The notes under the pieces were generated by a model. That model had not been told where the DNA came from. It did no database searches and was given only the letters and a program-made list of their open reading frames with translations. This document shows, one piece after another, positions 1 to 47,300 of a stretch of 64,000 nt of DNA (position 1 is its first letter; each line of letters opens with the position of its first letter). This DNA is from Botryllus schlosseri (Eukaryota). The position numbers were made by a program, and so were the translations under genes. The DNA lies in assembly GCA_051294905.1 (NCBI GenBank), contig CM119374.1, positions 22,382,001 through 22,446,000 on the forward strand, read 5' to 3'.

Positions 1-343
1 CTGTGCAAAGTTTTCTGTCGTTACCAGTCGTCGGTATTTTAGGATCTGTTGTCTGTACGTTGGTCGACGAATTTGTCAAGTTCTTTGAGTTCAAAGTCTT
101 TTGGGTTGCGAGGACTGCGGTTGCGATTCTGGCAGGGTCACCCGCTAACGTTACTATGAACCGATTTACATCTTGCACAGGGTTTGGTGTTGACGCATTT
201 CTAGTGCTCGTATTCGATTTACAAACTTTGATGTGTGAAAGTATAATCAGCGTGAGCGCTATGATCTGGTGAAACTTTGATATCGACCTTCTATGTCTTC
301 TTATGTCTTCTTCCTTCCCGCATCTGTCGTTTTGTCGGTACAT
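1..343 (-). CDS. Orphan GPCR copy 1, 5' part of the ectodomain exon (runs off the left edge of the window)
   Basis: ATG at 343. The frame is open to base 1 and reads MYRQNDRCGKEEDIRRHRRSISKFHQIIALTLIILSHIKVCKSN...DPKIPTTGNDRKLCT, collinear with the first 114 aa of the 9989-10867 ORF. It is absent from the ORF track because its stop lies outside the window. Confidence 0.85.
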   Translation of the reverse strand, partial: MYRQNDRCGKEEDIRRHRRSISKFHQIIALTLIILSHIKVCKSNTSTRNASTPNPVQDVNRFIVTLAGDPARIATAVLATQKTLNSKNLTNSSTNVQTTDPKIPTTGNDRKLCT

Positions 344-3991: not shown

Positions 3992-5363
3992 CAGCGATTG
4001 CCAACCTTTTTACTGGGGATGGTGTGAACCTCAGAAAGGTTCAGGTTCGTGTGAACGCGAACCTTTTTGAAAGGTTCTGTGTGAACGCGAACGTGAGCTT
4101 CATGACGTCACGTGACGTCATATTGCTAATTCCAACCCTACATTTCCGTGAAATGATATATATTAATGTACACGATACCTAGCGACGACTCGGGCCACAT
4201 AATGCCACAATGCTTGAGTACATACTGACTTTTTAAACGTTGCCAAATGTATCAACTGAAGCAATCAAATACTATAATAAATCTCATAAAATCAATATCT
4301 TCCGTCGCTTTGCCAACAATTTCGACAAGGATTTGCAAGGGAATATAAGCTTGCACATTAACGGTCTAGGCCTGACCGGACAATGTATTCGGCGTCTCTA
4401 GTGTTGCTACGTTGATATTGAGCAGAGTGTAAAACGTTATACAGCAGTAGCCAACACCCCAATCGCACGGATTTGGTTTTCATGATACAATAAACATATG
4501 AAATCGAAATGGACCTTGTACGCTTGCTAGACTTTTTACATCAGACAACGATATCAATTTCATTGATTGGTTGAATAAGCATCATTCGATGACTTCAGAA
4601 AGCTGGATATTTCGAAAAAACTTTTCTAACAAAGCGGGTAAAACTTTTGAGATTTCCTAGGTGCATGCTCGATTAGTGTTGATTTTATATGCTGCCCGCG
4701 ACATACATAGAGTGGCCCGCAGTTGAAATGCCATGAAGTTCAACCAAAGGTGTTATAATGTCGTGCAAATTGTAATATATGAAGAAGGTTCACAGTGCAG
4801 AACCTACCAAGGTTCGTTTGTGAACGTGAACCTCTAAATTTCCTAGGTTCACACACAGAACGCTAACGTGAACGTCACGTTCACACCATCCCTACTTATT
4901 ACTATTCACGGTCGCATTTCGAATACTTATATAGCCTACGGCCGCATTTTAGTGCATAGCCGTAATGAACTAACTGGACGCCAAATATCCATGTTAGCCT
5001 GTCCCTGTCCATTTCCATTGAGCTCCGGACTCGTCTATTCATTCATATCGGCTTACTATACGCACCGAAATGAAGAATCGTCCTGTTATGAATAGTTACT
5101 GGGATTCGTTTTCTGGTTGATCAAGGCGCGAATTTTTTTTCAAATTCATGAATGCATTTCGTAGTTAATGTTGTCTTCGTCATTATCGGCGAGAAATGGC
5201 TTTGAAGGGGCATTGCTGTCGTTAAAATACATTCATTAAATACGATTTATTCCGAGTATATGTGTATAAATAGGCGAATATTGTATAGATTCAGCAATCC
5301 GGCCCGCCCAGTACTTAATTTTCCTGTATCCGGCCCGCAGACTGGAGAAGTTGCCCGCCCCTG
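3992..5363. mobile_element. hAT (Buster/Charlie-like) MITE sequence hosting a nested element
   Basis: Left end cagcgattgccaacctttt resembles the element at 26096. Right end is agttgcccgcccctg. There is no matching TSD, so this may be two partial elements. Confidence 0.5.
4014..4894. mobile_element. hAT-type MITE nested in another MITE
   Basis: TIRs tggggatggtgtgaac / gttcacaccatcccta. The 8-bp TSD ctttttac / cttattac matches at 7 of 8 positions. Confidence 0.85.
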
Positions 5364-5386
5364 TTCTAGTTGGTGGCCGTGGTCGG

Positions 5387-6638
5387 TCATACTTGCGAAT
5401 GCACATTGTCATCAGAAGTCATTTCGCCGACCGAATTGACTCGGGGCCCGTCAAAGTGCGACTCTTTCATCACGATGCCGTCACTGTACGGCTCAGGCGA
5501 GGGGACTTGGGAGTTAGCTGCGTTTTCCGAACACCCCACGTCAATAGCAATCACCCGGTGAGCTTCCTGCCTTTTACTGGAATCGTTTGAAACACCGCAG
5601 TGCAGTACGAAGGGTCTGAACCTCTCTCGAAACATTCGAAGTGCAGCTTTCCGAAATTCCTGCACCCGCAAATTGTAGATGACGAAATTCCATAAACTGT
5701 TACTTGTTAACATGATAACTGCCAAATATTCAGTGGTAGTGAACGCCGATGCGCTTTCTATACTTAAAGTCCGCGGCTGCTCCCAATTTGTAGCAGAATG
5801 CATAAACCGCACGACGGAAGTACAAATCACCGGCACCACCGATACCGAAAATGCCAGCACCATCATCGCTAGCGTGCTAGCTAGTCTCCTTTCCAAATCT
5901 CTACGTGAATCGGATGGATATGTAATAATTTTTCTTCGGGCGAGGGCGTGTTTCCGATACGCGTAATATGTCATCCCAGTAAGTATCCACATCACTACAA
6001 GCGGGATAAAGACAGTCCCAGCCGATACTATGTATGCAGGCTTTCCGTCGGCGAATATGTAATTAGAGCTCATGACTTTATACAAGAATCCAGGAGTGAA
6101 AACGGGGAGTAGACATATCACTGTGCACACGAACCATAGCAATCCGTTTAGTCTGACAGCGCGACGTTTGGCAACGTATGGGTTGTACGTGAGCGGTCTA
6201 TACACTGCCCAAAATCTATCTACGCCCGCGAACAAAAGTATGTATATTGACAATATAAGGACCAGCAGAGAGAAAAATCCCATTGTGACCACAAATTTGT
6301 TTTCGAAAATGTCTCCAAATTCACCACCGCCGTCGTGATAAATCAGATCTGCATTGTCGTAAGGGGTCATATTGGCAGTCTTTCCATACGGCTGCTTTAT
6401 TACTGCTCCCATGTGTCTAGGCTTGAAGAACGTGAGATATTGTAAAATTATCATGTTCGGCCACACCACGACTCCAATCACTAGATCGGCGAGAGCGAGG
6501 GAGATTTTGTAAATGCCTTGAGTGTCTCGCAGTTTAGCTGTAGTCCCGAATACGCACAGAATGATTATGTTACCGGAGATCGTTGTGATGCATGCTGCTA
6601 CCATGAACGCTATGCAAATTATGATGCTGTTTCGGCAC
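5387..6638 (-). CDS. Copy 2, exon 2: rhodopsin-family 7TM domain and C-terminal tail
   Basis: TM1 GN, TM2 SLALADL, TM3 VDRF, TM4 W, TM5 FIP, TM7 NSLWNFVIY, helix 8 EFRKA. Confidence 0.92.
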
Positions 6639-9600
6639 CTAGAACAGATTGATATTAGGAAAATTCAATCCGTGACAACCATACATTACTCAATACATCG
6701 TAGGCTAATTCATTCGTGGTGTAGCAGCGCTGACGAATAGTGACTGGGTTGAAATCGAAAGTACAGATTTCACGTTGCTAATGAGCGCAATATGCGTCAC
6801 GACCAGTTCAAATTTACTATGAGATGATACTTGGTACAGTCTTAGCGAAAAACGCAAAAGTGTCACACGAAAACAGAACCTACAACAGCATTAGACCGCG
6901 GTATAAATACTTCGACATTATTTAACTGCCACATGTATTTTTTTAACTTTTAGAACTTAAAATTCGCTACGAAATTACTTCAGAAATCTGAAACAACTCA
7001 TCATATTTCAACGAACAACACATTCGCATTCGCAATTTATTCACTCTAAGCTTTCCAACTGACCCTCGTCGGGAGTTGCCGTCAGTAAATACGGAGATTG
7101 CAGACTGAGAGTATCATGTACTGAATTTGCAAGTTAGCCTGTGTTAGTGATGTAATTTGTTGTCACGTGGTGCGAAAGACCACGCTGTTATAAGCACCAT
7201 AACATGCTTTTATTAATAATTAATAATAATAATAATAACGGAGATTGCAATTCGAAATTGAAAGATGAAATAGGTAGAGTGACGAAAGAATGGTATAGTA
7301 ACAACTTCGAGAGAATTCACAAAACAAGAGCGTTAAGCAATAAAGCAATAGTACAATCATAGTGTCCTATATGGTGTCGACACAAGCAAATCTCACGGCT
7401 CAGTGAAATTGTATCACGTCACAATTTATATTTGGCTACAGGCAATTTGACGGTCATTTTTGACCGGCTTGCCGAGCATTAAATTTGGTAAAACGGGTAT
7501 CAATCGAAAGCTGACTCTGCACAGATTACGAAAATATAAATTTTATTCCGCCCGCGGCCCTGGAACCCCCACAATCAGCCTCGAATTTTTCATTGTTATG
7601 GAGATTGGCATTGGACGCAACAACAGCTTTCGATTGATACCCGTTTTACCAAATTTAATGCTCGGCAAGCCGGTCAAAAATGACCGTCAAATTGCCTGTA
7701 GCCAAATGGAAATTGTGACGTGATACAATTTCACTGAGCCGTGAGATTTGCTTGTGTCGACACCATATAGGACATTATGGTGCAATACAAATTGGCTATA
7801 ATATATAGCCAGAGACGCAACACTTACGAAATACACGGAGAGAATAGAGCCGGTCTTTTTGCCGACAAAGAATCTGCTGCTCGGGTTTTATTATAGTCGA
7901 TTCGAGAACCTTTAAATGGAACAGAGTACGTCCGCGAGCAAGAACTGTAAATCTGTTATCGTTATACGATTTTGCACAATCTGGATGCGTAAGAAGGTGC
8001 TGACCTATTGCATAGTTACATGGCATGGCCTGGTCATAGTCTCGCAGGAAAGGGTTACTTGTCTGCGATTGACTGTCTGAAATAGCATTGACGTCAGGTG
8101 TTCTAATCTGCTTGGGCACATGTTGGTTAATTCTTTGTTGCAGACGAACTGAAGTACGACCCACATAACGACTGTCGCGGCGGCACGTATAATTGTAAGT
8201 AACACTACGCTGTTTATTTGGCAGATAGTATATCCTTCTGTGTTCCGGGAAAGCGAGATTTTGTGGTGAAAACAATCCTAGGTTGTACCCACATGAAACA
8301 TTGACTAATAGGGGACATGATTTGCTTCCCACATCTACCAGAAACTTTACAAATTTATGGTAAATGTAAATATACTGGACATTTGCTTGGTCCAATAAAT
8401 TTAATGGCTCTGACGTCAATTAGTTTTTTGTCAGTGCTGGACTTTACAATGTGATCTGGATAACGTTAGACTGGACGATTTTCCGTATGAAATCTAATTC
8501 AGATTCAAGTTCCGACCAGAGCCCTGTGAACAAGCGTTCGTATCAGATTAGCTTTGCATCTTTGTCGGACAAGATGAATTCCAAGCGATATATTGGCCGA
8601 AATACCATCACGTCACTTTGAGAAGTTACCATGCGAGAAAAATCAGCTATTACGTCATATGACCTTTTGGGATGGTAAAACAAGGCCCGTTGATGATTCG
8701 TGACCGGAAATTGTGATTTGGACTTGGGCGTGACCTTGTGTAGAATTACTCGAGCTCGGACTTTAGTCGGGTAAAATTCTAGAATCATAGATGGGCTTGT
8801 GACTCAGAACGCAGTGCCTTGGTACAACCACGGACGCAAAAAACTATCAGAATGTTATGGGAAATAATAATATATCAATAGGCCGTATAGTCGGCATTGC
8901 GAAGCGTAGCGTATTTAGCCATCAAATGACAATGTCAATCATATTGGCATTATCTCGCTCCTTGATGTATAGTTAGTTACTCAAGCGCCATCTTGGGTCT
9001 GTTTATCTATTCTGTTATCGCGTATTAGAAGTGGCGAGAGAGGTAGAGGCACGCTCCACCACTTTAACAGTAATGGATTTCACCGTGATTGGACTTTATT
9101 ATTACTATGACGCATAAATCATTATATTCACGTTGTTATTGATCAGTTCCGATATTCGAAGGCAAATCTAACTCCGATGCATGCACGTCATGATGCATTT
9201 GTACACTAGCATGATGTCTTACTGTCTGTAACTAATTATTTGGACAAACTATGCCAAGTACAACAGAAAATTTATTCAAATATCTAAAAATATGATATTA
9301 TCGTGTGAGGCGTGAATTCACAATATTGTATCAATTTGTTTGCGAATTTTGTTGAATACCAGTCTTCAAGGTCCCGTCCAATAAGGCCTACTTGGAAATA
9401 CATTGAATAAAACCTGTTATTGGTGCTGCGGCCCGCGAAGTCATCAAAAACGAGGAAGCTGGCCCGTGGGCATATTTGAGCTTGAGACCCCTGATTTATT
9501 ACAGTGATTTACACCATGAAATAATCGGAACCGTATCTAACTAACCAGACAAAGTAAACCAGCGATTGCTAATATACGGCAATTTATACCATGATGATTG

Positions 9601-10867
9601 GCTCAAGCCGTGCAATAATTAAATTGTAACAGACAAATAAATGAAAGCTATTCACTCGCCTACAAGCGGGGTGAAACATTCGATCGACACCCCGTAGGTT
9701 CAGTTTTCGTGTTACACATTTTGGGTGTGAATGCACGCACACTCTTTGCGCTAAGGATTCGCTGTAGACGAACATCTCGTATTCTATAGCTTTCTACCAT
9801 ATCGCACCGGTGCAAAATATCTAAAGGGCGAGACACAGAATATGATCACGTTAAATATCTTTTGTGGTGGTAATACGCTCCTTTTTCACGATCACTATGG
9901 GTCGTGCATTGTCGTAGTAGGAAAAAAGTCATATTTGATAGCTGAACACAGCCTACGTGGTGCATCCATTTGATAATGTACTATATGCTTACCACGAGGG
10001 CATCCCGGTCCATGGCGACACTCCGCGATATTGCGCTGTGTAAAAATCATACCCGTGCCACTGTAAACCGCAAAATGGTGCGTACGGCTCGATAATCTCG
10101 TGGAACCGTCCCACTCCGCCATCGCTTCGGTCGAATAAGGCGGCTTGTACGCATGATTTCACCAAGTCCTGAAGTTCCATCGTGCTCGAGTCTAGCTTTT
10201 CAATCAAGTCCTTCCAACTCACCACACCCAGAAAGAAAGACTCGTTCACAAACTGATACTGCCTAGCAACTTGCGCAATATCGGCGTGGCAAGCCGTTTC
10301 AACTTTACTTCTGTTGCAAAACAGATCGTACATACGCCTGGTGTATTCGGTAAGAGGATAAGTCGGGCGTTTGCATTCATCATTAAATTCATTGCATCGC
10401 CATCTCTGCAAGCGTTCCAACATGACAACGAGATAGCGAGCTCCATTGATCCAAACCTTTGCGTAAGTCTGGTAAAGGCGTCGACAGCACATTTCTTTGT
10501 ATTCAATACTCGGCATTGGAAAGTCTGTGCAAACTTTCCCGTCGTTACCAGTCGTTGGTATTCGTGGATCCGTTGTGTGTTCTTTGGTTGACGAATTTGT
10601 CATGCTCTTTGAGTTCAAACTCTGATTGGCTGAGTGGACTTCAGTTGTGATTCTGACATGGTTACCTGCTAACGATAATATGGACCGATTTACGCCTTCC
10701 ATTGGTTTTGATGTTGACACATATCCAGTGTTAATATTCGATTTACAAACATTGATGCGTGAAAGTAAAATCAGCGTAAACGCTATGATCTGGTGAAACT
10801 TAGTCATCGACCTTCCGTCTTTTCTCGTGTCTTCTTCCACCACGCCCATGTGGCTTCGTCGGATCAT
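5387..10867 (-). CDS. Orphan class A GPCR with a large Cys-rich ectodomain, copy 2, intact two-exon model of 708 aa
   Basis: join(10867..9993, 6638..5387). Donor TG|GTAAGC at 9992 and acceptor aatctgttctag|G at 6639 join in phase 2 to give ...GMPSW-CRNSIIICIAFMVAAC... The CDS is 2127 nt (709 codons). Confidence 0.85.
7214..7238. repeat. (TAA)n microsatellite
   Basis: Directly visible: taataattaataataataataataa. Confidence 0.8.
7358..7779. mobile_element. Long-TIR (foldback/MITE-like) inverted repeat
   Basis: Near-perfect ~155-bp arms (~7358-7514 and ~7624-7779) around a ~110-bp spacer. No clear TSD. Confidence 0.8.
7800..8610 (-). mobile_element. Decayed Penelope-like retroelement (RT C-terminus plus GIY-YIG endonuclease), inside the copy 2 intron
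   Basis: Broken frames read GQYIAWNS..ANLIRTLVHRAL..FIGPSKCPVYLHLP* and YNYTCRRDSRYVGRTSVRLQQRINQHVP..AIGQHL..FHLKVLES..LCRQK, typical of Penelope-like element (PLE) RT-thumb and GIY-YIG regions. Stops and frameshifts are present. Confidence 0.85.
9993..10867 (-). CDS. Copy 2, exon 1: signal peptide, Ser/Thr stalk and Cys-rich ectodomain
   Basis: Hydrophobic segment IIAFTLILLS, several NxS/T sequons and 9 Cys after the stalk. The apparent stop TAA lies inside the GTAAGC donor. Confidence 0.88.
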
Positions 10868-12365: not shown

Positions 12366-14127
12366 ATAGTTCATTGAACGCTCTCGTATTCTAATTTCAT
12401 GCTGCTGACCTCATATTTTGTGATACGATTGTTGATGTACGATGTTCAATTGATATGGTTGCATTTATAACGTGTTTTAAACAGTGTTTTAAACGAAGGT
12501 CTTTTTTTAAGTGTTTTTTCAAGTTGTAAAATTATGTCATAATTGTGTAAATGCTTTCAAAAAACATGTTGTATGATCCAAAGGACAATTACGATATTGC
12601 CGACGTATATGAATATGGGATGGTTACAACCTAAAAATAGTCGGCCCAACAGCAATATAGTACAGATATTTCGTCGAAGGAGTTACATCCACTATGACGG
12701 CACAATTGAATATTCGTGGCGTAATGACAATAAAAAACATTTTTTAAACAAGGGCCTTGTCTTAAACACGTTTGTTTTAAATTGATTACTGTTTTAAATG
12801 CAGCCCTACGTATTTAATACTCTACTAGTTGCTGACGATTCCCCCTGTCGAGTGTCCGCCGAAACTATTCGGGTTCACTTCAATATGAATATACTATTCA
12901 ATTATAGATGGAATTTCAGTACCTCCGAGAAGCTGTTCAAAACTTACTTAATGTACAAAGGGCTCTCACTCTCGAAACTGGTGTAGTGCCTCACTCTCCG
13001 CTCTACCTTGCGGGATACAATACTTAGTTCGGAACATTTGTTGGAAAACCCAGGCTAGCATGATGGAAGTGTTTTAGCGGGAAATTTCGTGACAACAATG
13101 TTGCAAGTATTGTGGGAGCTCATTTCGCGCAGAGCGCGACTTAATATTGAAAGATTTGACAGATTTTGTCGAATGTTAATTTGCAATGTGAACTCAGGGA
13201 TACAGAGAACCATTATTCTACGATATAATCATATGCTCCTACTACATCATCTACTGCTGGCGAGATAGCGTAGTAGTATAATCCACAGCTACAGCACCAA
13301 TGAATTGTGGTTTCGAGTACGACTCCAAATTTCCTACTTGAGTGCTAATCGTGCTGCAAGTCGGCAGTTAAGGAATCAAAAAGAAGGAATATCGGCCTGC
13401 TGTATATTACCATCGTAGTCGACAGACACTATGAATAGGCCTACCACAAACAGCAACAATATCATCTATTGCGATGCCATTTCTCTTCAGTGCAGGAGGC
13501 AACAGGCAAAAAAACAATTTCAATTACTATACTTTTATCAAAATTGCAGAATAAAACACGGGATATTGAAAATCATTAACATGGATCCGGGCTAGTTTCT
13601 ACAAGCAGGTTCAAGAATGTAAAATCTAGCAATCATATACAGAGTACAGAGTTATTTACGAACATTTGTACTTACACGATCGTGGTTACCGGAAGTTAAA
13701 GGATCCGGGGTCACTATCCATATTTTTTCATCATATTTTCGAACGGTGTTATTACAATTTGATGATAATGCATTTTGGAAATCTACTTTATACCTCAGCA
13801 TCGTACGGTGTAGTTAGTGTTCACAGTGAACTTTTCATTGAAGCTCGTTTTCAAACCAAACGTTCCCTTCCGGTCGTTTGCACCGTCCGGAACGTGCTGC
13901 ATTCTACTTTACAGATACTTGTAAATCGAGCGATCTCAATAACCGGACTTTCTGTGAAAATCCAATGTTGATGGGCTAACATATCCAAACAGTAATCACC
14001 GCACGCTTGACTCGATGATGTGTTCTTTATGGGCCTCATCGTTTTGAGAGAGTACAAACAAATGAAGAATTGGATATGCCATGAAAATTTAGTATATGCA
14101 CTTTGTAGTTTTATGACTTCATGTGGG

Positions 14128-19996: not shown

Positions 19997-20965
19997 TCAT
20001 CTTGATGCCTGCGCAGGGTTTGCTCTTACTATGTATCTAGTCAAGCTGCTCATGACGGATTGATATAGGTTTGCAGTGTTCCCTATAATAGCAAATGAAC
20101 CGAGCACGGATCTGTGTCGGTCGCGTAGCTCCGCTGCGCTAATCACAGTAGGTGAATGGGGCCGTCTTGTATTCGATGCTTTTGGCGGCCGCGGTTGGTC
20201 GTTCATTGAATGCGCATTGTCATTATGAGTTATATCTCCGACCGAATTGACTGTGGTACTGAGTCGTTCGTTGTCTGTGTGAGTGCGGCTGTTTCAACCC
20301 CAAGCCGTCACTATACGGCTTAGGCGAGGGGATTTGGGGGTTAGTTGTGTTGTTCAAACATCCCATGTCAACAGCAGTCTTCCGGCGCTGATCCTGCGTG
20401 TTACTAGAGACCTTCGCAACACCTCAGTTCACTATCCACCGTCCAAACATCTCCCGGAACATCTCAAGTGCAGCCTTCCGAAATTCCTGCACCCGCCAAT
20501 TGTAGATGAAGATATTCCATAAACTGTTACTTGTTAACAAGATCACCACCAAGTATTCACTTGTAGTGAACGCTGCCAAGCTGTTTATACTTAGCGTCCG
20601 CGGTCGTTGCTAATTAGTGACAGAAGACGTAACCCTCACGACATTAGTACAAAGCACCGGCACCACCAATACCGAAAATGCCACTACCATCATCGCTAAC
20701 GTGCCGACAACTGCCTTCTCCAAATCCCGCCGTGAAGAAGACGGAGATGTAACTAACTTTTTCCGCGTGATCGTATGTTTCCGACACGCGTAATAGGTCA
20801 TCCCGGTAAGGACCCACATCATCACAAGCGGATGAAGAGACCTCCCGGCATTGCCGATGCTGTGTCTCCTCCAGGGAATATAAAATTAGAGCTCGTGACT
20901 ATATACGGGACTCCAGGGGTGAAAACGGGGAGTAGACATATCACTATGCACAAGAACCGTAAAGG
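19997..20965 (-). pseudogene. Orphan GPCR copy 3, remnant of the 7TM exon (TM4 to C-terminus only)
   Basis: Aligns to ~5370-6140. It has a premature TAG at 20610-20612 where copy 2 has TGG. Homology stops at ~20965, so the acceptor and TM1-TM3 are missing. Confidence 0.85.
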
Positions 20966-21071
20966 AGTGATTTAAAAATATGCTATAAACTATGTCTATA
21001 GTATGGTTCTATTCTCTTAGATTTGCATAACAAAGAGTTATTATTAGGATGGGTTAGCTGCATCTCACTGT

Positions 21072-21418
21072 GTTATGTATGACACAATGGCTTGCAAGCA
21101 AGAATTTCAACTATACCCCTGCCAAAGACGACCGTGTCCGAACAATATGTAAATAGATCACTTTAGTAATTCTGTCGTTTGAATATCAGATATAGTTCCC
21201 CATTTCACGAACGCCGAGGCGAGACGGCCGAATAAGGTGACCCAGTGAAAATATGAATTTCGGCCGTCTCGCCTCGGCGTCCGTGAAATGGGGAACTATC
21301 TGATATTCAAAACGACAGAATTACTAAAGTGATCTATTTACATATTGTTCGGGCACGGTCGTCTTTGGCAGGGGTATAGTTGAAATTCTTGCTTGGAAGC
21401 CATTGTGTCATACATAAC
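21072..21418. repeat. Near-perfect palindrome (~160-bp arms), MITE-like
   Basis: gttatgtatgacacaatgg...cggccgaa is mirrored after a ~25-bp spacer. Confidence 0.9.
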
Positions 21419-22301
21419 GGTTCCATACTATTACCGAGAATGCTATTACCGAGATGGACATTATCGAGAATGCTATTACCGAGAATGGACATTACCGAGA
21501 ACGGACACTTTTTGACAATTTTTTGACTTACAATACTCGAGTAAAATCCGGAAAATGGGTGAATTTACCACGAAATTGTGGTTGGTCGACTAAGAAAAAA
21601 TGGTCAACTTTCAGGCTCAAATCCCGAAATACAGATTTTATTCTAGATTGTCCGTGGATGGCTAGAAATGAAAGTTCTTCGCTTACGTTCGAACCACGAT
21701 TTCCTGTTTAGCATCATTTATGTCCATTATCACTCGAAACTATCCACCATCTTATCTCTAAAAGCTATAAAATAGGACGAATTGCCAAAAATGAGGACAT
21801 TTAGGCGTCCTCGGAGGACATTCTCAAAAACCTAAAAGGAGGACAATATGAGGGTGGGCGGCGCTAGAGCACGATGATTTTTGAAAGGGTGCGCTGTAGG
21901 AAAAAAGGTTAAGAACCACTGGCTTAGCGCGTGAACTCGGAATCTCACATTCGCTTACAAGCCCTCGTCGAAATTGTTGGCAAAGAGACGGAAGATATTG
22001 ATGTTATGGAAGTATTATAGTATTTGACTGTTTCTGTCAGCATGTAGGCCCTACTTCAACATAGGTCTGAGTCGTCAGAAATGTAGAGTGGAAATTTGCA
22101 ATATGACGTAACATGACGTCATATGTCTTTCACGGGCTCGCACCATCTCTGGCGATTACCTTGATGAACTTTGGGAAAAAACGAAAAGTAATATTCATAC
22201 TTATATACATTGTCGTAGTAGGAACTAGTCATGTTGCTAAACACTAATAGCTAAACACGGCATACGTGGTGGATGCATTCGAGTAAAATCTCTATGCTCA
22301 C

Positions 22302-23170
22302 CACGACGGCATCCCGGTCCATGGCGACACTCCACGGGATTGCGCTGTGTGGAACTCATATCCGTGCCACTGTAAACCGCAAAATGGTGCCTGCTGCTCG
22401 ATAATCTCGTGGAACTGTCCCACTCCGCCGTCGCTTCGGTCGAATAAGGCGGCTTGTCCGCATGATTTCACCAAGTCCTCAAATTCCATCGCGCTCGAGT
22501 CTAGCTTCTCAATCAAATCCTTCCAATTCATCACACCCGGAGAGAGAGACGCGTTCACAAATAGATATCCCTAGCAACTTGCAGAATGTCGGCGTGACAT
22601 GCCGTTTCAACTTTACTTCTGTTGCAAAACAGATCGTACATACGCCTGGTGTAATCGCTGAAAGCCCAAGTCGGGCATTTGCATTCATCATCAAATTCCT
22701 TGCATCGCCATCTCTGCATGCGTTCCAACATGACAACTAGATAACGTGCTGCGTTGATCCAAACGTTTGCGTAACTCTTGTAAAGGCGTCGACAGCACAT
22801 TTCTTTGTATTCAATACTCGGCATTGGAAAGTCAGTGCAAACTTTTCTGTCGTTAACAGTCGTTGGTATATGTGGATCTGTTGTCTGTTCTTTGGTCGAC
22901 CCATTTGTCAAATTCTTTGAGTTCAAACTCTGCTTGGTTGGGATGGATTGCAGTTGTGATTTTGGCATGGTTACCTGCTAACGTCACTATTAACTGATTT
23001 ATGTCTTGCGTTGGCTTTGGTCGGGACACATTTCTAGTGTTAATATTCGATTTACAAACATTGATGTGTGAAAGTAAAATCAGAGTGAGCAAAATGATCT
23101 GGTGAAGCCTTGACATCGACCTTCCGTGTTTTCTTATGTCTTCTTCCTCCGCGTCCCTGTGTCGGATCAT
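22302..23170 (-). pseudogene. Orphan GPCR copy 3, ectodomain exon with two frameshifts
   Basis: The three track ORFs (22853-23170, 22555-22968, 22298-22558) tile the copy 2 exon 1 protein. There is a +1 base at ggg 22940-22942 and a -1 base at ~22569. The donor TG|GTGAGC is kept at 22301. Confidence 0.88.
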
Positions 23171-38300: not shown

Positions 38301-41300
38301 ATAACCCTGTCAGTAGCCCTGGGTGTTTTGTGCCACGGTGTGAGCTTTATGTAGAACAGATTAGTATCAGTTTACGTAGGACCGCAACAGCCGCACCACA
38401 AACCCCCAATGGGAGGGGTCCAAGCTGCGAAGGGGGCCCAAAACTTCACAAATAAACTTAAAGTAGAATATGTTCGTGTGTTTATGTCACGGATGTTGTA
38501 CATGGTATGTACAGAGGTATTGACGAAATGATACACGTAGAAGGCAGGGTGGTTTAGGGCGACAAAGCGCCCAGACATTTCGTTTAATACCCTATGGGGG
38601 CCCCAGATCAGCGTTTTGGAGGGGGCTAAAAAAGTACTTTTCCTGTGCTGAGTATATACGATATTGCTCTTTAGAACACTTATCTGCAAATGAAAGGTTT
38701 GTACTCACTCAAAATGGACAAGATTCGAGATAAAATTCGACGTTTGATTCGGTAACCAGCACACAGTGAAGGCGAGAATAATTGTTGTCACAGTTTTCGT
38801 AATGCGGCGGACCTAAACATAAATATAAGGATGAACAGCGGCCCTGATTGAAGATGTGTTCAATATAACACTTAATAGGATGCATCAATGAATAGCACAG
38901 TGCATTCTATTAATCCACGCAGTTCAATGTGTTCGGCTATAGCATGGATTCTCTAGTTTTTGTTGGCCGTGGCCCATTGAGGCCGAACTCTTGTCCTAAA
39001 GTATACAACAGGGGTTCTCAACCCGCGGCCTGCAGACGCTTATTCTGCGGCCCGTGAGATCTTTCAATATGATCGCAATTACTACCGGCACAGTATTGTT
39101 ACATATTAATTTAGCTACTTAAGCTCTCTTATCACACCGTCTCTGTTCCGTTTCATTGATTCTCATTCTTCAATGTGTTCTGGTTTCTTGATACATGATC
39201 GAGTTTAGATTCTTATTGTTTTGAATAGGTCTTCGGACAGTTCCATCTGGAGCTATACATATCACCTGATCTTAGAAAAAAGCGTTACTAGCTAGGTCTC
39301 AGGCCTAGCAATCCATATTTTGAGGCATTGTTGAGCATCAGCCATGGAAGGAAAGATTAAGGGTTGATTCGTTTGCTCAGAAATTACCCCGAACATGAGA
39401 CTTCTTCTCATATCACTGAGAGCTCAAAGTGACAATGGCCTCTGTAACGAAAAAGTTACCGCAATTTTGTACTTGCTCTCTCACGCATTGAAACAGAGAG
39501 TTCAGTTCTCTGGTGCAAGGGTTTGAAGGTGCACATTATGGCTCTTCAAAAATTACTTTTTTTCTCAAATCGTACTGGCTACTTGATAAAATTGTTAGGT
39601 TACCTAATTTAAGCCTACACACAAAATTTGGTTCAATTCCAGCCAGTAACCGCTTTGCTACAGAAGAAGAAAATTTCCATTTATTATATAAAAATAAATA
39701 ATAAAAAATTTGAAAATTTTCTGTTCACCCCATGAAAGTGTTAGGCTGTCTATAGAAACGATCCTCACCAAATTTGGTTCAATTCCAACCAGTGGAAGCG
39801 GAGTCATTGCCGTCGAAAAATTTGGATTTGAATAAAATAGTATATACGGTGAGCACAATTATAATAAATAAACAAAGAATCGGTCACCGTAAATACTATT
39901 TTATTCAAATCCAAATTTTTCGACGGCAATAACTCCGCTTCCACTGGCTGGAATTGAACCAAATTTGGTGAGCAGCGTTTCTATAGACAGCCTAACACTT
40001 TCATGGGGTGAACAGAAAATTTTCAAATTTGTTATTATTTATTTTTATATGATAAATAGAAACTTTCTTCTCCTGTAGCAAAGCGGTTACTGGCTGGAAT
40101 TGAACCAAATTTTGTGTGTAGGCTTAAATTAGGTAACCTACCAATTTTATCAAGAAGACAAAAAAGTCATTTTTGAAGAGCCCTAGTGCACATACCGACT
40201 TCAGAACGAATGCAATGCACGCTTCATGAAAGGATTTTGCTTGTTCCGTCGGAAGATAACATAATCTCACTAGAAACAGCAACTGGAAGCTTACGAACGC
40301 TGTCCATTGATGCTGTAGAATGCATACAAATGTACCAAATGCCTATTGCCCATGTACGACTGGTAAATAGGCTATATTAGCCTAAATATAATAGTAGTCC
40401 ACAAATATACCGTAATAATGTTTTGCGGCCCGCAGCGGTTTTTTGCTGTTAAGATGCGGCCCGTTATGCAAGGAAAGTGGAGAACCTCTGGTATACAATA
40501 TACACTGTAAAGTAAATAGAATAAGTTGAATAGATGAGTTGCCTGTTTTCATCGTGACGCGAGTGCAGATCGTATCAGCGGCATTTTCTGTTACGTAATA
40601 CGACCTTTAAACCGATACCTGGGTTAAGTAGGTTTTACATGCAGTGATAATCGCATCTTAGTGTTTTATTTCAGTATAGACGCTAACTTTTCTCGTACTC
40701 GAGGACCCACAATTACTACTCTGACCTCCTCTAATATTTTATAAATTGCGCTTACGTGGATCGATACATGCCTGTGGTTATATAAAACTGGACTCCCGGT
40801 TACCTGACCATCTCTAGCTTCGCTGCTTGTCGAGGAAGCCCTGACAAGTCTACCGCCTTCTTTACTTTTTTCACGCCCTCGCACATACGATACGAGTACG
40901 AGGTAGCATCGGCAGATTATTATCAGCGGGATTACGAAGCCGATCACGTTGCGCTCCACCATATGAACTACCCACCACACATCAGTTTGATTTTCCGGGT
41001 ATTTCCAACTGAGAATACAATTCCCCGCATTACACAGGCTAAAGAACATGATAATATATTTGAAAATCGTCAAAAATATCTTCACTTTCTTAGATTTATC
41101 ATGGTAAATATACAGTTTGAGAAGTTCCACTTGACGAGGCTACATGAATGTTGAGCCGATAGACCAGATTTCAATACTTCTTGGATCAGCAATGCGTGCA
41201 ATATATAATACTAATTTTTAATGATCTGAAATTATCATGCAATCGTGTAACGACCAGAGATGGTCAGTATCGAAGTACTTCTACTTTTTGAAGTACTCGA

Positions 41301-44300
41301 AGTAGATTTTTCCCACTCACACTACTTTTCAAGTGGTTATGATTTTAGACTTCTTCTACTTCTACTAAACAGTATTCAGTTTTGTAGGCAAAATAAGCCT
41401 AGAATACCTACTCACTTACTGACTTGGGAACCACTTCTCCTACTTCTACTCGAGTAGAAATTCCGGAGTTACTTGTACTTCTACTTGAGAAGCGGCGGTG
41501 ACTACTTTGACCACCTCTGGTAACGACTCATACATGAAGATGATCCTGGACATGACACTGAAAATAGCCTTCTGCATACCTGCAATATGTCTTATTCCTG
41601 GAAACGTGTTCCCCCCGAAACACGGCCGATGGCACTGCGAGTAAAATGCTAAAACCCCATACGATTGCACACAAACACCAGCATCTTGCCGCTGTTCGTA
41701 AACTTTTGGTCTGCACTTGTATACCTGGGAAAATAGGAATAAATAAATGGACTAAATCTTCGAGGAGGGTTGGTTCGATTATGTTCACAATAAGAGCAAT
41801 TCTGTTCACAATAAGAGCAGTCTCATGTTCACAATAAGAGCAGTCACGTTCACAATAGGAGCAGTCTCATGTTCACAATAAGAGCAGTCTCATGTTCACA
41901 ATAAGAGCAGTCTCATGTTCACAATAAGAGCAGTCATGTTCACAATAGGAGCAGTCTCATGTTCACAATAAGAGCAGTCGTTGTATTCACAATAACATCA
42001 GTCGCAGCACCACCATATCCCCCGGACACGATGTCCGAGTGGCAACATAGTCCGAACACAACCCAGACATGATGTCCGAACACCCCCAGACACGATGTCC
42101 GAACGCCCCCCCCCCCCCAGACACACCCCAGACATAATGTCCGAACGCCCCCCACCTCCAGACACGATGTCCGAGTGTCAACGCAGTCCGAACACACTCC
42201 TGACATGATGTCCGAACACCTCCAGACACGATGTCCGAGTGTCAACGCAGTTCGAACACACTCCTGACATGATGTCCGAACACCCCCAGACACGATGTCC
42301 GAGTGTCAACGCAGTCCGAACACACTCCTGACATGATGTCCGAACACCCCCAGACACGATGTCCGAGTGTCAACGCAGTCCGAACACACCCCAGACATGA
42401 TGCCCGAACACCCCCAGACACGATGTCCGAGTGTCAACGCAGTCCGAACACACTCCTGACATGATGTCCGAACATCCCCAGACACGATGTCCGAGTGTCA
42501 ACGCAGTCGCAGTTCGCGAAACGATGGTGTCACCCGTGAGAGCGACCAATCATTCAATGATCGCGTGCGTTTTACTGAGCCTCCATTGTTCTCTCACAAA
42601 TAAATCGACCGCAAACGAAGTGATCGAAGCTTGCAGCTTACGCTGTAGTAAACTAGTATTGCGAAGTAATTTAGTAGCAAAATGTCTATTTCTGTTCTCT
42701 ATTCTTACCTTAACCAAACCTCTTATCTTATTGAAATTGAATTCGAAAATCGAGTGCCTTGACTTGACTCGAGTCACCTTCGAAAATAGATTGACTTGAC
42801 TTAACTCGATGAGTCTAAATGTGCAATAACTCGAAATGACTCGTGACTCGAAGGTAGTGACTTGATCCCAACACTACGTTGCACTACGAAAATTTTGAAT
42901 TATTTCTACCATGATGCGTGATGTAACCTCCGGAATTCCTCATCCTGCCAGATTTCGTTAAAATATAGTTCTTTCATGTAAAAATTTGTCAGTTTTTGGT
43001 CATCATGTCTGGGTGTGTTCGGAGTTTCGGACAGCGTTGACTCTCGGACATCGTGTCTTATTCGGACACACCATGGCTGGTATGTATTGTGAATATTATT
43101 GTGAACATGACTGTTCTTATTGTGAACATGAGACTGTTCTTATTGTGAACATGAGACTGTTCTTATTGTGAACCTGAGACTGCTCCTATTGTGAACATGA
43201 CTGCTCTTATTGTGAACACGAGACTGTTCTTATTGTGAACATGACTGCTCTTATTGTGAACACGAGACTGTTCTTATTGTGAACATGACTGCTCTTATTG
43301 TGAACATGAGACTGTTCTTATTGTGAACAGAGAGAGAGAGAGAGAGATATGATATTCTTTCTCGCCTGCACCATCGAGATGCTTTGGCGACGGAGTTGCG
43401 ATACGGCCCCATGAGGTCATCTAGTCTGCGCCCCCGTTTTTTTTTCTCCTCCATGCTATCCGTGATTGCTGAGCGCCTAGCAGGATAGCTGCGGATACCA
43501 TTTTTCGAGTCTTTGGTATGACCCGGCCGGGGATCGAACCCACGACCTACCGCTCGAGAAGCCGGACGCATAACCATTACACTATCTCGCTCTTATTGTG
43601 AACCTGAGACTGCTCCTATTGTGAACATGACTGCTCTTATTGTGAACACGAGACTGTTCTTATTGTGAACATGACTGCTCTTATTGTGAACATGAGACTG
43701 TTCTTATTGTGAACATGACTGCTCTTATTGTGAACACGAGACTGTTCTTATTGTGAACATGACTGCTCTTATTGTGAACATGAGACTGTTCTTATTGTGA
43801 ACATGACTGCTCTTATTGTGAACATGAGACTGCTCTTATTGTGAACATGGCTGTTCTTATTGTATTATCATGTCTGGGGTATCTTCGGACTGCATTGACA
43901 CTCTGAACATCATGTCTGGGGGTGTTTGGATATCATGTCTGAGGTGTGTCCGCACTGCGTTGCCAATCGGAAATCGTGTTCGGACATCATGCCCCGGCCT
44001 GTGTTCAAATATCAAGTCTAGGGTGTGTTCATAAAATCATGTTTGGGGTGTCTCCGGACTGCGTTGACACTCGGACATCATGTCTGGGGCGTGGCGAGTT
44101 CGGACGTCGTGTCTGGAGGATGTCTGGGGGGTATTCGGACATCATGTCTGGGGTGTGTCTGGGGAAGGGGCGTTCGGACATCGTGTCTGGGGTGTGTTCG
44201 GGCTGCGTGTACACTCGGACATCGTGTCTGGGGGGGTTCGGACATCGTGTCTGGGGTGTGTTCGGACTGCGTTGACAGTCGGACATCATGTCTGGGGCGT

Positions 44301-47300
44301 GGTGACTTCGGACATCGTGAATGGAGGATGTCTGGGGGGTGTTCGGACATTATGTCTGGGGTGTGTCTGGGGGGGGCGTTCGGACATCGTGTCTGGGGTG
44401 TGTTCGGACTGCGTTGACACTCGGACATCATGTCCGGGGCGTGGTGAGTTCGGACATCGTGTATGGAGGATGTCTGGGGGGTGTTCGGACTTATGTCTGG
44501 GGGGGGGGCGTTCGGACATCGTGTCTGGGGTGTGTTCGGACTGCGTTGACACTCGGACATCTTGTCTGGGGCGTGGTGAGTTCGGACATCGTGTATGGAG
44601 GATGTCTGGGGGGTGTTCGGACATTATGTCGGGGGTGTGTCTGGGGGGGGGGGCGTTCGGACATCGTGTATGGGGGTGTTCGGACATCATGTCTGGGTTG
44701 TGTTCGGACTATGTTGCCACTCGGACATCGTGTCCGGGGGATATGGTGGTGCTGCGACTGATGTTATTGTGAATACAACGACTGCTCTTATTGTGAACAT
44801 GAGACTGCTCTTATTGTGAACATGACTGCTCTTATTGTGAACATGAGACTGCTCTTATTGTGAACAGAATTGCTCTTGTTGTGAACATAATCGAACCAAC
44901 CCTGTAGAAATCTTCCGTGACTATACAGAAAGGGCTGCTTTGAAATGTACATCTTTCTCGTCTGTTGTGAGATCAAAACGCCAATCCCGCGGCCGACACG
45001 GCTTCTAGGAAGTCATAGAGTTCTAGAGTTCTAATTGTCAAGTGAGCAGCGAGAATAAATGAAGAGTGAAGAGTAGTCCATTAAAGTGGTCCATGAAACC
45101 ATACCCATAAAAGACATTGAACTCTATCAAAATGCATTATCCTAGGCCACTAATCCTAATCAGGCAATATGCGACACTGTCGTTGTATAGTGTAATTATT
45201 ACAATAGTAAATACGTCATTGAAAGTGAAATAATAATTTGTATATACCTTTCACTACAACGTTGTATCTGTCGATTGCCATAACCGTAATTAAGAAGACG
45301 CTGGCGTACATGTTGACATTCGTGAGCATTGACGCCGCTTTGCATCTGAAAAGCGACGTAGCATGAATGATTGAATGAGAAACGAATCTGTCGCGGAAAA
45401 ACGATTACCATTCATCATTCTATATATTTAAATATATGAGTAAAGTAGAAAAGTGTCCTTGGCATAACGAGTTGATTGAGATGCAACATCAGTTAGTAAG
45501 CGTGGGATTTGGGAAAGTCACTTTACCGGAACGTCATTATATCCACTGATGTCGATATATTTGAATGCGATGTTTTTCTGTGGAGATTTCAGCCGGCCAA
45601 ATGAGCTGCGTGTAGAGACAAGCATTATATAACATTTTTGAGCCACTTTTTATCAAGTCGGCCCGTTTTTACGATAAAACCAGACCGAGATCCTCATATA
45701 CCATTCATCCAACATACCCAAGTGATTTTTTTCGGATTGCGAGACAGAACGAAGGGAACAACTAACATTTTTTCGCCTAGGATTTACTTACACGATATTC
45801 CCAAATATCCAATGCCCTTGAATATGAGTCACAGCCCATACTGGCAAGGTCGCTATCAAGGATAGATCTGCAATTGCAAGGTTTCCGACGAATATGTCCA
45901 CCTGGGTTAAAAGAGGCGATTAGGACTGACTGCTCAATTTACTATATTGTCATCGTTCATCACGGTAAATGTCTGCAGATCAGTCCAACAATTCATATAA
46001 TAGTGTCTATTGAGTTGTTACTACAAAATAGATAGACCTAGCCACGTCAAAAATAATCGAAGTAGGAGTAGAAAATAAAGGTTAAAAATTAATCAACTAA
46101 ATAGTTTGAAAACATTAATTGAGGCGAGTCGTCGCAGACATTCTGTTAGTCGAAAAACAGGTCAGTGTTCAAAATAGCAAGATAGATCTTCATGGCAAAC
46201 TCAGAATAACTTATAGTACTACAAATACAATTTGCTAATTTTTATATAGTCTGTTACGGTCAATTGGAGGCCATATCAATCAGTTTTTCAGATAATTTCG
46301 GTTATACAGTTTCTCAAAACTATTCTAAACTGTTTCTACTAGATAGTGTCTATTATGTTAAAGCTAAGTGGTCTCAAATCAATAACTGGTCCATTTGTTA
46401 AACATGTCAATCGCACTGTAATAAATTCCTAGGACCAAAATTTGCATTCCACACAGGAGACAGATTGACGAAAGCTTGACGCCAGGCATAATCTTCAATG
46501 CTTGGTTAAACCGCACGCCAAATATCAATATTTATACTTACAATTATAGACAGCTTCTGGACGTATAATCCCGATAATGAGCGACAAGTCGCTTTATGGA
46601 TACTTGTTACCGAAGTGGGAATATGGCAAAATATCATTTACATATGTCAATTAGATTTGCGGATAGTGCCATATATAATTGTCACTGCGGTGAAAAGCCG
46701 CTGCAAAACACACACCCGAATTAATCTGAATGACCCGTTGTCGATATATCCCTCGGCCATTAAAAAGGCATGAGAGATTATTCCATGTCCTATGATTAGC
46801 TCCTATTAGTGGCCTTGAGCGCATTGTACACACGAATTGTGGATTCTATCAGGCGTACATATTAGTGGCGTTTGCCGAGATCAATATTTCAAATGTAACG
46901 ATATTCCAACACATTGGCATAGCCAGGAGGCTAAATGGACCATGCCCCTGCCCCCCCCCCCCCCCCCCTTGCATCTGCTGCACAATATAAAAGGGAATGA
47001 TGAAATTGCCCATTGAATGGTTGCCGTATCTCGAAGATTTTCCTGGGGGAGTTCCATTAAACTCATACATATTTGCGAATATGCGACGCCTCGACCAAGG
47101 CTAGTTTTTGAGACTACTTGCTTAAACACGTTGCTAACATTTCAACTTGAAGTATTTCCATTATCTCGGAATTTTCTCTTTTAATTTGCGGAAGGGCAGG
47201 AATTCACGACATTACGTATAATTCAATGGCAATGCTGATCACGTCGATCACATCTGGCTATACTCTACACAAAATAAGAACAGGAAAGTTGAGAAGACAG

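Follow-up and report, generated by a model that had tools for sequence, protein, structure and literature searches.

The closest described relatives of the gene reported here are the LF receptors of Ciona intestinalis type A (Ci-LF-1-R, Ci-LF-2-R, Ci-LF-5/6-R, Ci-LF-7-R and Ci-LF-8-R), which were deorphanised in 2019 (Shiraishi et al., PMC6475428). They were functionally expressed from cDNA and respond to LF peptides at nanomolar levels, with Ci-LF-2 activating Ci-LF-2-R at a half-maximal effective concentration (EC50) of 0.71 nM (PMC6475428). Their expression is found mainly in the siphons, and they share 21-26% identity with cannabinoid, adenosine and adrenergic receptors. In the same study the LF receptors formed a urochordate-only clade, including Oikopleura. 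Some family candidates failed to express, and replacing their N-terminal regions was proposed to improve expression (PMC6475428). We analysed a 64,000-nucleotide stretch of the Botryllus schlosseri genome (assembly GCA_051294905.1, contig CM119374.1, positions 22,382,001 to 22,446,000; hereafter the window, in which all positions are given). We consider it likely that its minus strand carries, at 5387-10867, one intact two-exon gene for a 708-amino-acid member of a tunicate-only family of class A G-protein-coupled receptors (GPCRs) that includes the Ciona Ci-LF receptors, and, taken jointly with this, that the receptor would be activated by a peptide bound with the help of its ectodomain and its first extracellular loop (ECL1). 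Among living animals tunicates stand closest to vertebrates, and to our knowledge their LF receptors belong to the small number of neuropeptide receptors that lack a counterpart elsewhere. We know of no functional study of the family other than that of the Ciona receptors, which handled them as ordinary class A receptors and left the outer domain unmentioned. The words 'extracellular' and 'cysteine' do not occur in it, and no N-terminal domain of LF receptors is described there (PMC6475428). As a receptor family it is not new, and some of its members have been deorphanised; only its ectodomain appears to be undescribed. A preliminary description of this DNA had put the locus forward as an undescribed system. 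That claim is not supported, as the family is present in databases in the form of full-length models and its Ciona members are the Ci-LF receptors.

Two minus-strand open reading frames (ORFs) make up the gene, one of 292 amino acids at 9989-10867 and one of 405 amino acids at 5387-6604. The 3′ end of exon 1 reads CCC TCG TG/GTAAGC, 9993 being the final exon base, and exon 2 begins after TTCTAG with G TGC CGA AAC AGC from 6638, in frame into the 405-amino-acid ORF. Joining 9993 to 6638 gave an in-frame coding sequence of 2127 nucleotides. The intron splits codon W292, and the first complete codon of exon 2 encodes C293. The coding part of exon 1 (9993-10867, minus strand) thus holds residues 1-291 and the first two bases of codon W292, as delimited by the ORF list, the donor sequence and the in-frame join. 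The phase-2 intron (6639-9992, minus strand; 3354 nucleotides, GTAAGC...TTCTAG) was placed by its splice-site sequences. Exon 2 (5387-6638, minus strand) holds the last base of W292, C293 (6635-6637), the seven-transmembrane (7TM) core, the C-terminal tail and the stop codon (5387-5389). When compared with 30 full-length homologues (535-730 amino acids), the spliced product aligned without gaps over the junction (VSPWTGMPS-WCRNSIII).

The same gene structure was found at other loci. In a Logan contig from another species (L001), about 200 nucleotides separate an ectodomain ORF from the 7TM ORF downstream of it, and a phase-2 GT..AG intron lies one codon ahead of the conserved Cys-Arg, at the same position and in the same phase as in the window. 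An ENA contig from another tunicate assembly (L003) has the same phase-2 intron (AG/GTAAGC...TTTAG/G TGC CGG), with the two parts 6.8 kb apart. A third contig (L002, Logan, 3160 nucleotides) contains an uninterrupted ORF of 712 amino acids with both ectodomain and 7TM; it may represent either a transcript after splicing or a gene copy that lacks the intron, and was not counted as RNA evidence. The proposal that these two unrelated-looking ORFs encode one GPCR thus holds, on the in-frame join, the gap-free alignment to 30 homologues and the phase-2 intron shared with the loci of two other species. Its coordinates, intron length, phase and ten-cysteine pattern all proved correct in the sequence.

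The two ORFs could instead be separate genes, one for a secreted cysteine-rich protein and one for a truncated receptor, or the locus could be a silent young duplicate that merely looks intact. In two bulk RNA-seq runs from the same species (X4 and X8; sampled fractions 6% and 13%) neither exon received a read. The paralogue nearby is a pseudogene, and unspliced RNA would encode a soluble ectodomain, as reading through the donor site meets a stop codon at once. The 405-amino-acid ORF, however, has no start codon upstream of the first transmembrane helix (TM1), its first ATG lying inside TM1. Full-length homologues align over the junction without gaps, and three loci share the position and phase of the intron. 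A silent copy would sit poorly with two exons free of stops and frameshifts over 2127 nucleotides, whereas the neighbouring paralogue has decayed, and siphon-restricted expression like that of the Ciona LF receptors would explain the missing reads. Altogether, we find separate genes or a silent copy scarcely credible. The contig runs X25 and X1 look like genomic DNA, with even coverage over intron and exons and, in X1, a contig (9904-10129) that crosses the donor site unspliced; they speak neither for nor against splicing. Because no RNA read covered the exons, we can only infer that the window copy is spliced and expressed; the join itself rests on comparative evidence and is strongly supported by it.

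When ectodomain residues 101-291 were run as a HMMER query against 1.84 billion cluster representatives, 148 matches reached E<=1e-3, far more than chance would give, and 105 of these also passed E<=1e-10. Most of the 148 are 190-280 amino acids long and correspond to exon 1 called alone, while about a quarter (535-730 amino acids) contain both parts. All named matches are from ascidians: Styela clava, Clavelina lepadiformis, Ciona, Phallusia mammillata and Botryllus schlosseri. One of the Ciona entries (H2YKB3) may be from C. savignyi. A profile search added only exon-1 ORFs, and since several of these occurred on each large ENA contig, the genes appear to form tandem clusters. The family is, as far as these searches indicate, specific to the tunicate lineage, and the lineage-specific origin suggested in the preliminary description is thus upheld. 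The automatic names of its members were inconsistent (cannabinoid receptor 1A, beta-2 adrenergic-like, thyrotropin receptor-like, histamine H2 and D1B dopamine-like). The ectodomain explains why these genes are broken into two by gene callers and why the names they receive (cannabinoid, thyrotropin, histamine, adrenergic) vary so widely.

The link to the deorphanised receptors was provided by the entry A0A1W5BPN7, named 'Ci-LF-2 receptor' in UniRef, which was found by a search with a Ciona member. It is 619 amino acids long and contains both parts. Its ectodomain (residues 39-208) matched the 80-sequence ectodomain family alignment (A1), which was used for profile searches, hhalign and AlphaFold2, with an hhalign probability of 100 and E 5.9e-42. 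Compared with the window protein by BLASTP, its ectodomain was 30% identical (E 8e-27) and its 7TM 35% identical (E 5e-54). In the maximum-likelihood tree the window gene clustered with three Styela genes (support 100/98), and Ci-LF-2-R was placed in another clade (99/98). Because of this separate placement the window gene is best classified as a paralogous orphan in a subclade with ten ectodomain cysteines and not as an LF-receptor orthologue.

The 7TM core (residues about 296-618; 5660-6628, minus strand) was delimited by translation, hydropathy, PDB sequence matches and the model of a homologue. It matched Pfam 7tm_1 with E 3e-21 (76.5 bits, cutoff 30.5), and its hydropathy peaks fit seven helices. 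The D/ERY motif of class A is present at the cytoplasmic end of TM3 as DRF (GVDRFWAV), and its D and R are nearly invariant in a second family alignment (A2, positions D373 and R374). Two other class A motifs have variant forms. In place of NPxxY, TM7 has NFVIY, in which the N and Y are invariant (N550 and Y554 of A2) and the proline is replaced, and TM6 (SVVP) retains only the proline of CWxP. The disulfide between TM3 and the second extracellular loop (ECL2) is absent, as position 3.25 is Val and ECL2 contains no Cys. This bond is also missing in some accepted class A subfamilies and its loss is no bar to class A membership. ECL1 is long (about 45 amino acids) and conserved, and beta strands were predicted in it in the model of a full-length homologue. 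The best PDB sequence matches of the 7TM were the beta3 adrenergic receptor (3.5e-9), adenosine A1, 5-HT2C and the cannabinoid receptor CB1. In the AlphaFold2 model of a full-length Styela homologue both ectodomain and 7TM scored about 90, and the model was nearest to the adenosine A2A and beta1 adrenergic receptors, with a template modelling (TM) score by target of about 0.8. The identities published for LF receptors agree with both the PDB matches and these structural neighbours. On this sequence evidence we classify the window protein as a class A GPCR with a divergent 7TM.

The part of the protein that precedes the 7TM begins with a signal-like region (10739-10867, minus strand), which two other copies within the window conserve. 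A hydropathy scan located its hydrophobic core in QIIAFTLILLS (residues 26-36), after which comes VCKS. A signal peptide is plausible here, and its cleavage would be expected. Exon 1 has two candidate starts, M1 (10865-10867, minus strand) and M21 (10805-10807, minus strand). The next segment is a Ser/Thr-rich linker (residues about 44-112; 10532-10738, minus strand), recognised by its composition (29% Ser/Thr in residues 45-112), by its three N-x-S/T sequons and by low predicted local distance difference test (pLDDT) values at the start of the model. The segment had earlier been called a glycosylated stalk; the linker and its sequons are there, and its glycosylation is to be presumed from the sequons.

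The ectodomain proper (residues 113-292; 9993-10531, minus strand) is cysteine-rich and is predicted to be mostly helical, as judged from the AlphaFold2 model, the fold and Pfam searches and the family alignment. Nine cysteines lie in exon 1 (C113, C127, C128, C158, C165, C184, C193, C239 and C266) and C293 is contributed by exon 2, giving the pattern C..CC..C..C..C..C..C..C..C. No Pfam family was found for the window ectodomain, and none was found consistently in the 80 members. Searching PDB sequences with the A1 profile returned nothing relevant. With the 80-sequence alignment, AlphaFold2 produced a model with a pLDDT of 92.9 and a predicted TM score (pTM) of 0.87, containing about ten helices and one beta hairpin. 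Foldseek detected no match to this model below E 3, either in the PDB or among Swiss-Prot models. Against 2.3 million AlphaFold Database (AFDB) clusters the sole matches were three tunicate GPCR entries, one of which is E4YX06 (TM score 0.45), an accession that we take to be of Oikopleura type; this would accord with the published LF-receptor clade, in which Oikopleura is included. In the ESM Atlas a shape search reached a TM score of at most 0.33, and both shape and feature searches were uninformative.

These results bear on the possibility that the ectodomain is a very divergent form of a known cysteine-rich fold that the tools have missed, for example a Frizzled/NPC1-type cysteine-rich domain (CRD), a GFR-alpha/GAS1 domain or a secretin-type HRM. 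Ten-cysteine helical domains do occur in Frizzled and GFR-alpha, and helical folds are easily overlooked by structure search. A single-sequence phmmer search also matched residues 147-196 to the extracellular domain (ECD) of the GLP-1 receptor, which carries an HRM, with E 0.07. This candidate was rejected, as the match was lost with the 80-sequence profile, no HRM was found by Pfam and no class B-like structural neighbour was detected. For Frizzled/Smoothened CRD, GFR-alpha/GAS1, leucine-rich repeats (LRR), LDLa and GAIN/GPS there was no profile match (Pfam, in the window protein and the 80 members) and no fold match (Foldseek and VIA-align). A missed known fold is on these grounds improbable. 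The statement in the preliminary description that no LRR, LDLa, Frizzled-CRD or GAIN pattern could be recognised was borne out, since no Pfam, PDB or AFDB match was obtained outside the family itself, and the same is true of HRM. Within the limits of the tools the ectodomain appears to be an undescribed domain whose fold has no described relative, and it may be a new fold.

The cysteines were compared across 31 full-length sequences. Seven of them (C128, C158, C165, C184, C193, C239 and C266) are invariant, and C293 is conserved in 97%. C113 and C127 are jointly missing in four sequences. Most members carry two more cysteines, at the positions of window residues H271 and G288, and these are jointly absent in the window gene, its three Styela relatives and two other members. 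Since most members have twelve cysteines, the ancestral ectodomain would have had twelve, and the window subfamily, with ten, would have lost one of six ancestral disulfides. The ten-cysteine ectodomain first described is correct for the window gene; it had been overlooked that most members have twelve. Only two disulfide pairs could be derived from joint cysteine loss.

On the proposed mechanism, the ten cysteines would form five disulfides. C113 probably pairs with C127, because the two are lost together in four sequences. With Val at position 3.25 and no cysteine of the extracellular loops conserved across the family, C293 would have to find its partner within the ectodomain. As this last ectodomain cysteine stands only two to three residues before TM1, its bond within the ectodomain would fix the domain at that distance above the membrane helix, clamping it directly atop TM1 and beside the long conserved ECL1. 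By analogy with the Ciona paralogues, the window receptor may be activated by a short secreted peptide, and ectodomain and ECL1 together could form part of the site at which the peptide enters and is selected, in a two-part binding mode.

A different role for the same arrangement would be that of a structural cap or a folding or trafficking module, which shields the 7TM opening or aids surface delivery while the peptide binds to the helical bundle only. The clamp at C293 suggests a rigid, static arrangement that would suit a cap, and the LF peptides of Ciona are short, as small class A ligands often are. The expression failures of some candidates and the suggested N-terminal swaps fit a trafficking role (PMC6475428). 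On the other side, the ectodomain is conserved as much as or more than the 7TM over paralogues with different ligands, and it is never lost in full-length members, which would be a high cost for a passive part. Between the window protein and its closest homologue, for instance, identity is 48% in the ectodomain and 39% in the 7TM, and on such comparisons the ectodomain appears to be at least as well conserved as the 7TM. We regard the cap or trafficking role as a serious possibility, though a doubtful one.

The preliminary description had also suggested a tethered-agonist module. In that case, or if the ectodomain bound a protein, in the manner of adhesion GPCRs or protease-activated receptors, the trigger would be a partner protein, cleavage or mechanical force. 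The window clade is separate from the peptide-activated Ciona clade, so its trigger may be a different one. Yet Pfam detected no GAIN/GPS or cleavage motif, the two to three residues between the last cysteine and TM1 are too little for a stalk agonist, and Ciona paralogues with the same domain answer free peptides at nanomolar levels. Nothing in our analysis speaks for such a module, and we consider it very improbable.

Several points weigh against a peptide receptor with the binding mode proposed above. The window gene sits on a long branch (1.35) and has no orthologue among the deorphanised Ciona receptors, and because of this a peptide ligand for it is an extrapolation from the Ciona paralogues. 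The study of those receptors is silent on a role of the ectodomain and even proposes replacing N-terminal regions (PMC6475428). The lack of RNA reads on either exon, described above, has to be added to these. We nevertheless keep a peptide-activated receptor of the LF family, with ectodomain and ECL1 sharing in recognition, as the likely reading of the locus. A wider proposal is about evenly balanced in our judgement: that the ectodomain is a new fold which originated in the stem lineage of tunicates and, in a single fusion event, was joined to an amine/adenosine-like 7TM, creating a new way to recognise short neuropeptides by a disulfide-clamped helical cap together with a long ECL1, and that the ten-cysteine subfamily uses another ligand class. 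If the ectodomain does take part in peptide recognition, it would represent a third independent route to ectodomain-assisted ligand capture by GPCRs, besides LRR/LDLa and the class B HRM, and a clean case of domain birth in a chordate lineage.

The window contains parts of further copies of the gene. A paralogue is represented by an exon-1 remnant at 22301-23170 (minus strand; tblastn and three-frame translation), which is about 80% identical, has two frameshifts and keeps the nine cysteines and the donor site TG/GTAAGC, ending in PSW. Its 7TM-exon remnant at 20268-20962 (minus strand; tblastn) has lost TM1-4 and retains the part from TM4/5 to the tail, with one frameshift and in-frame stops. 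Because of the frameshifts, the loss of TM1-4 and the in-frame stops, this copy (20268-23170) was classified as a pseudogene. The preliminary description, which called it copy 3, was right that the nine exon-1 cysteines and the donor are kept, but overlooked the frameshifts and stops that make it a pseudogene. The start of a third paralogue, comprising the signal region, the linker and the sequence up to the first domain cysteine, was detected by tblastn at 2-343 (minus strand; 56-60% identity to residues 1-114), its remainder lying beyond the window start. It has Ile in place of Met21, which suggests that family members here initiate translation at the upstream ATG.

The intron of the window gene contains a very high-copy repeat at 7334-7915, where summed contig word depth was 10^5 to 10^6, while the exons reached about 40. 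Partial RNA reads with loose ends at 7354-7402 were numerous, and contigs showed inversions and skips. The repeat looks like an abundant, transcribed mobile element or miniature inverted-repeat transposable element (MITE). An ORF of 207 amino acids at 7796-8419 (minus strand) had a weak Pfam match to GIY-YIG (E 9.4e-4, 19.9 bits, below the 22.6 cutoff) and is probably a remnant of a transposable element bearing this domain. The homologous intron of L003 holds, at 12390-13476, ORFs with ZBED5/FAM200-type and zf-C2H2-SPIN-DOC matches. These ORFs indicate that, from one species to another, different elements have inserted into the large intron of the family. Relative to the window, the X25 contigs at 5341-6423 and 10145-10421 carry changes in about 2-4% of exon positions (for example 13/339 nucleotides), which reflects either high polymorphism or a different strain. 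Elsewhere in the window, a 154-amino-acid ORF at 40666-41130 (minus strand) resembles part of a different GPCR, namely the region of TM5, and at 44078-44772 both strands carry overlapping ORFs that consist of a repetitive Pro/His/Thr-rich unit.

Among known systems, the glycoprotein-hormone and relaxin receptors (leucine-rich repeat-containing GPCRs, LGRs) and the LDLa-repeat GPCRs of Ciona, a lineage-specific expansion (Kamesh et al. 2008, PMC2396169), likewise have a disulfide-rich extracellular module before a rhodopsin-type 7TM. Unlike these, the window protein has neither LRR nor LDLa, and its 7TM is alpha-group-like and not LGR-like in both sequence and structure; the NCBI name 'thyrotropin receptor-like' given to some family members is automatic. 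The class B1/HRM receptors offer a functional analogy only, in that a disulfide-stabilised ectodomain of about 120-180 residues precedes a peptide-responsive 7TM. They differ from the window protein, which shows no HRM profile match, has a mostly helical ectodomain model without a class B ECD match and carries a class A 7TM. Adenosine receptors and CB1, of the MECA cluster, are among the nearest 7TM relatives of the window receptor. Cannabinoid, lipid and melanocortin receptors also lack the TM3-ECL2 disulfide. Identity to the MECA cluster is only about 20%, however, and without orthology (trees in PMC6475428), and its members have short N-termini and, unlike the window family, no comparable ectodomain or long ECL1. 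The Ci-LF receptors share with the window protein the combination of ectodomain and 7TM, the restriction to tunicates, the long ECL1 and the likeness of the 7TM to cannabinoid, adenosine and adrenergic receptors. The window gene differs from them in belonging to a separate clade with three Styela genes and in having ten ectodomain cysteines in place of twelve.

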